A stretch of 64,000 nucleotides of DNA, taken from Octopus sinensis. Lineage: Eukaryota. The stretch is taken from NCBI RefSeq assembly GCF_006345805.1, contig NC_042998.1, positions 134,540,001 through 134,604,000 of the forward strand. Direction: 5' to 3'. The notes beneath the pieces were generated by a model. That model was not told the origin of the DNA and did no database searches. It was given only the letters and a program-made list of their open reading frames with translations. Below, one piece after another: positions 11,569 through 11,851 of this stretch. The position numbers and the translations under genes were made by a program. How positions within the stretch are numbered: position 1 is the first letter of the stretch; each line of letters starts with the position of its first letter.

Positions 11569-11675
11569 GATTACAATATATTTCATTGATCGAGATGGAG
11601 ACCGTATTACTGTGACTGCCAATATTGATGAAACACTTCTTGATGTGGCTCTGAGGAATGATATTGACCTTGAAG
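11569..11675 (+). CDS. FDX1: Mitochondrial ferredoxin, mutually exclusive exon A (ITIYFIDRDGDRITVTANIDETLLDVALRNDIDLE-G)
   Basis: AG acceptor at 11567-68, GT donor at 11676, 107 nt, phase 2 to 1. Splices in frame to [13 protein letters not shown] at 20756. FDX2-like N-terminal motif. Confidence 0.88.
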
Positions 11676-11738
11676 GTATTTATCTATCGATTCAATTTGC
11701 AGCAAAAGCTATTTTTCTTCCCCCTTTTTGTGTTTCAG

Positions 11739-11851
11739 GGTAACCATATATTTTGTGACCAGTGATGGCAACAAAATTGCAACAGAGGCCAAAGTAAATA
11801 GCACTTTGTTGGACTCTATTATTGACAACGACCTTGATTTTGATGGCTTCG
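11739..11851 (+). CDS. FDX1: Mitochondrial ferredoxin, mutually exclusive exon B (VTIYFVTSDGNKIATEAKVNSTLLDSIIDNDLDFDGF-G)
   Basis: Polypyrimidine tract plus CAG acceptor (11737-38), GTTAGT donor at 11852, 113 nt, phase 2 to 1. Matches the adrenodoxin NLDIDGFG motif. Not in the ORF track. Confidence 0.9.

Follow-up and report, generated by a model that had tools for sequence, protein, structure and literature searches.

Alpha-tropomyosin exons 2 and 3 are a mutually exclusive pair whose exclusion is sterically enforced. The homologous exons 6a and 6e of coq-2 are also mutually exclusive; they occur in helminths, annelids, and molluscs, and experiments have shown that the choice between them switches between ubiquinone and rhodoquinone synthesis (PMC7434440). 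The octopus locus described here resembles coq-2 (PMC7434440) in that tandem homologous mutually exclusive exons swap a core segment of a mitochondrial protein. In both cases one exon of the pair is universal, whereas its partner is confined to certain invertebrate phyla and may have arisen ancestrally or repeatedly. By analogy, coq-2 6a/6e is the closest functional counterpart of the octopus pair (PMC7434440). The two differ in that a functional switch is established for coq-2 only, the ferredoxin pair being known from sequence, and in taxon range, the nemertean Lineus having no A exon in its FDX1 gene.

The protein encoded by the octopus locus is the mitochondrial ferredoxin FDX1. Lipoylation, haem a synthesis, and mitochondrial P450s are fed by FDX1, and its choice of partner is treated as an open question in PMC12855868. 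The same paper names Glu133 and the C-terminus as determinants of FDX1 versus FDX2 specificity. The C-terminal tail of FDX2 is reported as required for FDX2 function in PMC11515921. The sequence comparisons presented below make it very likely that the octopus gene is an FDX1 orthologue in which tandem, mutually exclusive second coding exons specify two carriers of the FDX1 type and not a switch to FDX2, and that the pair goes back at least to the ancestor shared by cephalopods, bivalves, and gastropods.

Exon organization of the octopus FDX1 locus

The window, the whole 64-kb stretch of Octopus sinensis DNA that was analysed, matches O. sinensis chromosome CM016860.1 (GCA_006345805.1) with 100% identity and begins at base 3831 of the O. 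sinensis locus (L013). Exon 1, which encodes the presequence, lies outside the window, ∼2.8 kb upstream of base 1. The features of the gene within the window are as follows.

11569..11675, + strand: exon 2A of the FDX1/adrenodoxin orthologue, 107 nt, placed by sequence and splice sites
11676..11738, + strand: intron between exons A and B, 63 nt
11739..11851, + strand: exon 2B, 113 nt, placed by sequence and splice sites
20756..20882, + strand: shared exon 3, (G) plus 41 residues, with three of the four cluster cysteines, the acidic partner-docking helix DEEQDLLD, and ...AYGLTD
21116..21212, + strand: coding part of shared exon 4, (T)SRLGCQVYVTEDMDGVEIKIPTETNDIRGFS and a TAG stop, with the fourth cysteine

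The product of exon A is (K)ITIYFIDRDGDRITVTANIDETLLDVALRNDIDLE(G), an insertion-less, cnidarian-like version of the segment, and the product of exon B is (K)VTIYFVTSDGNKIATEAKVNSTLLDSIIDNDLDFDGF(G), the canonical bilaterian adrenodoxin version with a two-residue 'GF' insertion before the cluster loop. Exon A is bordered by the acceptor ...ctcttag/G and the donor AAG/gtattt, and exon B by the acceptor ...gtgtttcag/G and the donor TCG/gttagt (slashes mark the exon borders). The exons are homologous (44% protein identity) and 63 nt apart, and their phases are identical, each consisting of 1 nt, n codons, and 1 nt. The first nucleotide of A or B finishes a codon begun upstream, and the final one opens a glycine codon that is finished by exon 3 ('GA GCC TGT GAA GGT..' = G-ACEGT). 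The initial annotation had given the coordinates, phases, and peptides of both exons correctly to the base, and its proposal of one gene with two homologous, mutually exclusive exons reaching up to the glycine before the first cluster cysteine was borne out.

Exon 4 reads SRLGCQ...ETNDIRGFS, a C-terminus of the FDX1 type without the FDX2 tail, and is followed by two AATAAA signals (21260 and 21268). When human FDX1 was compared with the 64-kb window by tblastn, exon B (E value, 5e-9), exon A (5e-7), exon 3 (2e-14), and exon 4 (5e-5) were recovered. With both alternative exons and exons 3 and 4 matching human FDX1, chance resemblance is ruled out.

According to the proposed mechanism, splicing would take exon A or exon B, with no productive combination of both or neither. 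The lengths of the exons (107 and 113 nt) are both 2 modulo 3, so that inclusion of both, or omission of both, shifts the frame. A joined to B reads ..LEG and then a stop (GGG TAA at the junction), skipping of both gives K-S-L and then a stop, and either exon alone leaves the frame open into exon 3 (ACEGT). In Argonauta and Ruditapes the wrong combinations likewise meet premature stops, and each exon alone is in frame.

The intron between A and B has 63 nt in O. sinensis and O. bimaculoides, 81 nt in Argonauta, and 2940 nt in Ruditapes. As in alpha-tropomyosin exons 2 and 3, the octopus intron is very short (63 nt) and has a long pyrimidine tract, which by analogy would push the branch point toward the upstream donor; approximately 29 of the 63 nt are the pyrimidine tract of the exon B acceptor. 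With so little room between donor and branch point a steric block is plausible in octopods, and splicing of A to B across an intron of 63 to 81 nt is probably prevented in this way. The A-B intron of the clam FDX1 orthologue, at 2.9 kb, does not fit steric exclusion of the alpha-tropomyosin type, and the steric block is thus not a general mechanism. The one mechanism that holds in every species is therefore the frame rule with its premature stop. RNA pairing between introns, as a docking/selector system, was also considered, but only short and imperfect inverted repeats were found and these were rejected as evidence.

Two blocks of noncoding sequence are kept between Octopus and Argonauta and are putative splicing control elements: one just upstream of the exon A acceptor (GTGTTTAATATT.ATT.TTTATTG) and one downstream of exon B (TTTATTTACCAAA). 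A (CA)n microsatellite is located at 11240-11290, ∼280 nt upstream of exon A. Elsewhere in the window, an intact ORF of 631 aa (56817-58712, - strand) matches a Spin-doc zinc finger (E value, 6e-9) and a hAT C-terminal dimerisation domain (1e-5), with a weak match to DUF4371; by these domains it is a transposase of the hAT type, either a domesticated gene or an autonomous element. Three further ORFs (42796-43566, +; 61587-61976, +; 5789-6187, -) are repeat-like and have no Pfam match; by eye they resemble, respectively, a LINE ORF fragment, the C-terminus of a Tc1/mariner transposase, and the tail of a reverse transcriptase.

Isoforms, conservation, and selection

The products assembled from the window are identical to RefSeq proteins (P0001 for exon A and P0002 for exon B). 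The exon A form is isoform X2, named '2Fe-2S ferredoxin', with 155 aa (XP_036355365.1 in O. sinensis and XP_014769561.1 in O. bimaculoides), and the exon B form is isoform X1, named 'adrenodoxin', with 157 aa. Since RefSeq lists both products, the exon pair was already known to databases, and the earlier remark that no description existed holds only insofar as no paper on the pair was found in the full-text literature searched. The pair is an instance of mutually exclusive tandem exons in a well-known protein.

The Octopus isoforms rest on RefSeq models from two Octopus species, and the transcript proof comes from the A form of a cuttlefish. This protein (P0003; P0363 is FDX1 of Acanthosepion pharaonis) is encoded by an uninterrupted ORF of 165 aa on 22 independent Logan RNA-assembly contigs, which are direct evidence for splicing of exon A to exon 3 in a cephalopod. 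No full-length cuttlefish B form was among the matches listed in the search with isoform B. It may be that A is the major form in those cuttlefish samples, assembly effects being the alternative reason.

The initial annotation had asked whether the exons are conserved in relatives. Species with the pair were found among the cephalopods, the bivalves, and the heterobranch gastropods and are listed here.

O. bimaculoides: locus L014, tandem A then B
Argonauta hians: locus L003, tandem A then B
Acanthosepion (cuttlefish): fused A+B gene model P0121
Ruditapes (clam): locus L001, isoforms P0010 and P0177
Mytilus: A-type isoform P0006, fused model P0147
Physella: A-type isoform P0007
Plakobranchus: fused model P0149

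Both exons are open, with intact splice sites, in O. sinensis, O. bimaculoides, and Argonauta hians, and the same order of A then B, the same lengths of 107 and 113 nt, and canonical sites are found in Argonauta and Ruditapes. The presence of the pair in cephalopods, bivalves, and gastropods indicates that it is at least as old as their common ancestor and was later lost in some lineages. Exon A is absent, with B only, from the fully sequenced loci of Haliotis, the chiton Liolophura, Lingula, Lineus, Ptychodera, and the tick Dermacentor, and the locus of the sea anemone Actinia has a single exon, of the A type only; none of these seven loci has a gap able to hide an exon.

Between Octopus and Argonauta, exon A has a dN of 0.078 and a dS of 0.69 (dN/dS, 0.11), and exon B has a dN of 0.188 and a dS of 0.49 (dN/dS, 0.38). 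Both exons are kept by selection; exon A is under strong purifying selection, and the constraint on it is stronger than that on exon B. Mean identity is 63% among mollusc A exons and 61% among mollusc B exons, and A and B within one species are 25 to 56% identical. Splicing of one exon only, together with neutral decay of the other or its absence in relatives, would have spoken against a functional pair; for exon A the low dN/dS and the presence of the pair in other molluscs are the opposite of decay and absence.

O. bimaculoides (exon A at L014 8713-8819) is identical to the window at every base of exon B and differs from O. sinensis in exon A (11569-11675) at two positions, both of which change the protein (T to A and N to S). 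Some deposited models, of 181 to 194 aa, fuse A with part or all of B (P0121 from Acanthosepion, P0147 from Mytilus edulis, and P0149 from Plakobranchus). In Argonauta, exon A (L003 17485-17591) is intact and unannotated, the annotated form being B only. Automatic annotation thus often mishandles the locus in several molluscs, either through fused A+B models or by missing exon A.

Comparison of the exons with FDX1, FDX2, and other ferredoxins

Judged by sequence, both isoforms are mitochondrial [2Fe-2S] ferredoxins of the FDX1/adrenodoxin type. Pfam Fer2 (PF00111) matches both, and the Cys-x5-Cys-x2-Cys ... Cys columns are invariant in the alignments. Adrenodoxins are the best solved-structure matches of both isoforms (bovine 1AYF/1CJE and human 3P1M; 122.6 bits for isoform A and 132.9 bits for isoform B). 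Octopus and vertebrate FDX1 have in common the cysteine pattern Cys-x5-Cys-x2-Cys...Cys, the ACEGT loop, the acidic helix D-E-E-x-D-x-L-D, and the ..D-x-R C-terminal region. The D-x-D-G-F-G loop of vertebrate FDX1 is shared with isoform B, whereas exon A lacks the two-residue insertion and has Ala for Val/Ile in helix 1. Only the B type was seen among the vertebrate FDX1 sequences retrieved (loci not scanned); the octopus adds the alternative exon. Exon B was correctly recognized in the initial annotation as canonical FDX1, its 'D-G-F-G' loop being found in 23/23 aligned bilaterian FDX1 proteins.

In the same annotation exon A had been taken for an FDX2-like exon, and isoform A for a possible chimera of FDX2 and FDX1. 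The FDX1 and FDX2 motifs that it quoted agree with database sequences (P0159 and P0351). The reading itself was not supported by an alignment of 55 sequences, comprising mollusc A and B segments, other bilaterian FDX1, cnidarian FDX1-type, FDX2 (from vertebrates, molluscs, corals, and insects), fungal and protist Yah1-type, and bacterial ferredoxins. The mean identities of the mollusc exon A segment to the other groups were as follows.

Cnidarian FDX1-type: 57%
Mollusc exon B: 43%
Yah1-type and bacterial: 41.5%
Other bilaterian FDX1: 40%
FDX2: 39%

A neighbour-joining exon tree (500 bootstraps, 39 columns; weakly resolved) placed exon A with FDX2 in 1% of bootstraps and with mollusc exon B in 0%; in the same weak tree the FDX2 clade was recovered in 79% and the insertion-bearing clade in 38%. 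The exon-level phylogeny that had been called for thus did not group exon A with FDX2. As far as these sequences go, the tree excludes both groupings, and it cannot date the duplication.

The cnidarian FDX1-type proteins (Actinia P0020, Rhopilema P0023, Xenia P0025, and Sanderia P0005) are like exon A in having FIDRDGD, LLDVA, and NDIDLE-G with no insertion, and the rest of these proteins is FDX1-like. Actinia, the only cnidarian locus scanned, differs from the octopus in having no B exon, and hence no alternative splicing of that segment occurs there. The two-residue 'GF/GY' insertion before Ala-Cys is present in exon B and in all 23 aligned bilaterian FDX1 sequences; it is missing from exon A and from all aligned cnidarian, FDX2, Yah1-type, and bacterial sequences. 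The end in 'LEG' without 'GF', which had been taken as a mark of FDX2, is found in every ferredoxin group of the class except bilaterian FDX1, and is thus an ancestral state that does not distinguish FDX2. By its sequence states, exon A is the ancestral form, lacking the insertion, and exon B has the bilaterian 'GF' immediately ahead of the first cluster cysteine.

The shared exons also lack the features that define FDX2. The FDX2 signature in helix 1, L-Y/H-L-A-H/Q-R-x-G, is not in exon A, which has LLDVALRND; the metazoan FDX2 signature ACEASLAC(S/T)TCHVYV is not in exon 3; ACEASLACSTCHVYV of FDX2 is not in the shared exons; and the FDX2 tail TRNFYVDGHxPxPH (TRNF-x-VDG-x-x-P-x-PH) is missing, the gene ending ..IPTETNDIRGFS. 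This tail was present in every FDX2 retrieved, including those of Ostrea, Elysia, corals, and a shark. Exons 3 and 4 are 66 to 69% identical to bilaterian FDX1 and 47% identical to FDX2, which upholds the earlier description of the downstream exons as FDX1-type. One of the two motifs on which that description relied, 'AYGLTD', does not, since A-F/Y-G-L-T also occurs in fungal, protist, and bacterial proteins and is therefore ancestral and not FDX1-specific. Both of the specificity determinants named in PMC12855868, Glu133 and the C-terminus, fall outside the swapped exon 2.

The presence of a separate FDX2 gene was a further point raised in the initial annotation. A synthetic ancestral-like FDX2 probe was used to search a protein database, and the best 120 matches were listed. 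True FDX2 was recovered from Ostrea edulis (P0262), Elysia chlorotica (P0281), corals, and insects, so that the molluscs and cnidarians checked carry FDX2 as a separate gene; an Octopus FDX2 was not among the best 120 matches listed for this probe.

FDX2 structures scored 93.8 bits with isoform A and 68.1 bits with isoform B, and exon A raised the scores to FDX2, Yah1, Etp1, and a bacterial ferredoxin alike, the uniform rise that is expected of an ancestral-like segment. AlphaFold models compared by Foldseek have the same fold for both isoforms, with TM-scores to FDX1 and FDX2 that are about equal (0.81-0.82) and that consequently do not discriminate between the two. FDX2 and Yah1-type proteins (human 2Y5C and 8RMC; Ostrea P0262) have the same fold as the octopus protein (TM, 0.82) and, like exon A, no insertion before the first cysteine. 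They differ from it in that L-Y-L-A-H-R-x-G, ACEASLACSTCHVYV, and the TRNFYVDGHxPxPH tail all belong to FDX2.

Differences between the isoforms, their possible role, and their age

The swapped segment corresponds to residues 7-44 of bovine adrenodoxin and takes in the first two beta strands together with helix 1 and the D39-I-D41-G-F43-G44 loop, which leads into Ala45-Cys46. Its predicted pLDDT is ∼87-94 in both isoforms (AlphaFold). The fixed differences between A and B are D-R-D-G-D versus variable residues in the first turn, Ala versus Val/Ile in helix 1, L-E versus I-D, and the two-residue insertion; they are concentrated in helix 1 and the cluster loop. The presequence, the cysteine ligands (three in exon 3 and the fourth in exon 4), the docking helix DEEQDLLD, and the C-terminus are common to both isoforms. 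Both exons retain Asp39, a residue at which adrenodoxin touches its reductase in the crystal structure of the complex (PMC7593955).

Several explanations of the pair can be weighed against these data. If exon A were derived from FDX2 or resembled it, the chimera might serve FDX2 partners in Fe-S cluster assembly and perhaps replace a separate FDX2 gene. The end in LEG without 'GF' and F-x-D-R-x-G are indeed shared with FDX2, and the score of the human FDX2 structure rises from 68 to 94 bits with exon A. However, the shared states are ancestral, being present also in cnidarian FDX1-type, Yah1-type, and bacterial ferredoxins, and adrenodoxin is still the best match of isoform A. The higher identity to cnidarian FDX1-type proteins than to FDX2 (57% versus 39%), the grouping with FDX2 in only 1% of bootstraps, the separate true FDX2 of the oyster and the sea slug, and the lack of L-Y-L-A-H-R-x-G in exon A and of ACEASLACSTCHVYV and the tail in the shared exons, the tail being functionally required according to PMC11515921, make this explanation very improbable. 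There is even less reason to regard exon A (or B) as a dead or decaying duplicate, or the second isoform as an artefact of gene prediction, which would have almost no likelihood. The weak pyrimidine tract of the exon A acceptor, the unannotated exon A of Argonauta, and the loci with the B exon alone (Haliotis, a chiton, Lingula, Lineus, Ptychodera, and a tick) would fit such a duplicate. Yet in three octopod genomes and a clam the frame of exon A is open and its splice sites are canonical, its dN/dS of 0.11 at a dS of 0.69 is tighter than that of exon B, mollusc A exons are as conserved as B exons (63% versus 61% mean identity), and mRNA of the A form was assembled in 22 independent cuttlefish runs. 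For exon A, the selection and transcript data refute this explanation.

Both isoforms could also be made and be functionally interchangeable, with the pair kept for regulatory or historical reasons such as tissue-specific control of splicing. Whole phyla have a single type (A in cnidarians, B in most bilaterians), which implies that either type may suffice for all FDX1 tasks; the isoforms have their docking helix, cysteine ligands, and C-terminus in common, and exon A was lost in several mollusc lineages. Against interchangeability, A and B have been kept distinct since the cephalopod-bivalve-gastropod ancestor, with 25 to 56% identity within a species versus ∼60% for each type across classes, and helix 1 and the cluster loop are where the fixed differences concentrate. 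It seems unlikely, on balance, that the isoforms are equivalent. A role as two electron carriers appears most likely because the swapped loop adjoins the cluster and the reductase-contacting Asp39. As proposed here, one gene would give rise to two FDX1-type electron carriers that differ at the cluster-proximal surface, isoform B having the canonical bilaterian 'D-G-F-G' loop and isoform A the shorter 'L-E-G' loop with Ala in helix 1, as in cnidarian FDX1-type proteins and every other ferredoxin of the class. These carriers might differ in redox tuning, in the FDX1 clients that they favour (mitochondrial P450s, lipoyl synthase, or haem a synthesis), or in reductase; a switch to FDX2-type Fe-S assembly would not be part of the proposal. 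The pair amounts to a natural exchange of the N-terminal half, cluster-entry loop included, while the docking helix and the C-terminus stay constant, and comparison of the isoforms would probe what the bilaterian 'GF' insertion does.

A more far-reaching version, in which the duplication predated the last common ancestor of bilaterians and survived only in conchiferan molluscs, and in which the isoforms route electrons to different FDX1 clients, is possible but doubtful. Wherever a diagnostic position has the derived B state in all bilaterian FDX1 proteins, exon A is ancestral (it has Ala in helix 1 and L-E in place of I-D, and it lacks GF), and its lack of derived states that are common to protostome and deuterostome FDX1 favours an old origin. 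The distribution among taxa favours an origin within conchiferans, which needs one gain and few losses versus many losses. With a conchiferan origin, a small and probably structurally coupled set of characters would have reverted to the ancestral state. At alignment columns 4 and 29, exon A has the residues of mollusc exon B and not those of cnidarian FDX1-type proteins, and these common residues are possibly derived. If the pre-bilaterian origin were true, the octopus gene would hold both the 'before' and the 'after' of the change from which the adrenodoxin-type cluster loop arose.

Among other A-type FDX1-like sequences, six from ENA assemblies (P0008, P0009, P0014, P0017, P0024, and P0037) have ACGGTL for ACEGTL in the cluster loop, and the contigs of P0008 and P0037 are both 346,028 bp. 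A further A-type FDX1-like transcript (P0011, a Logan contig of 929 nt) has the 'EGW' motif, the other examples of which are proteins from mussel, chiton, and nemertean; if its source were a non-mollusc bilaterian, the range of the A type would widen.
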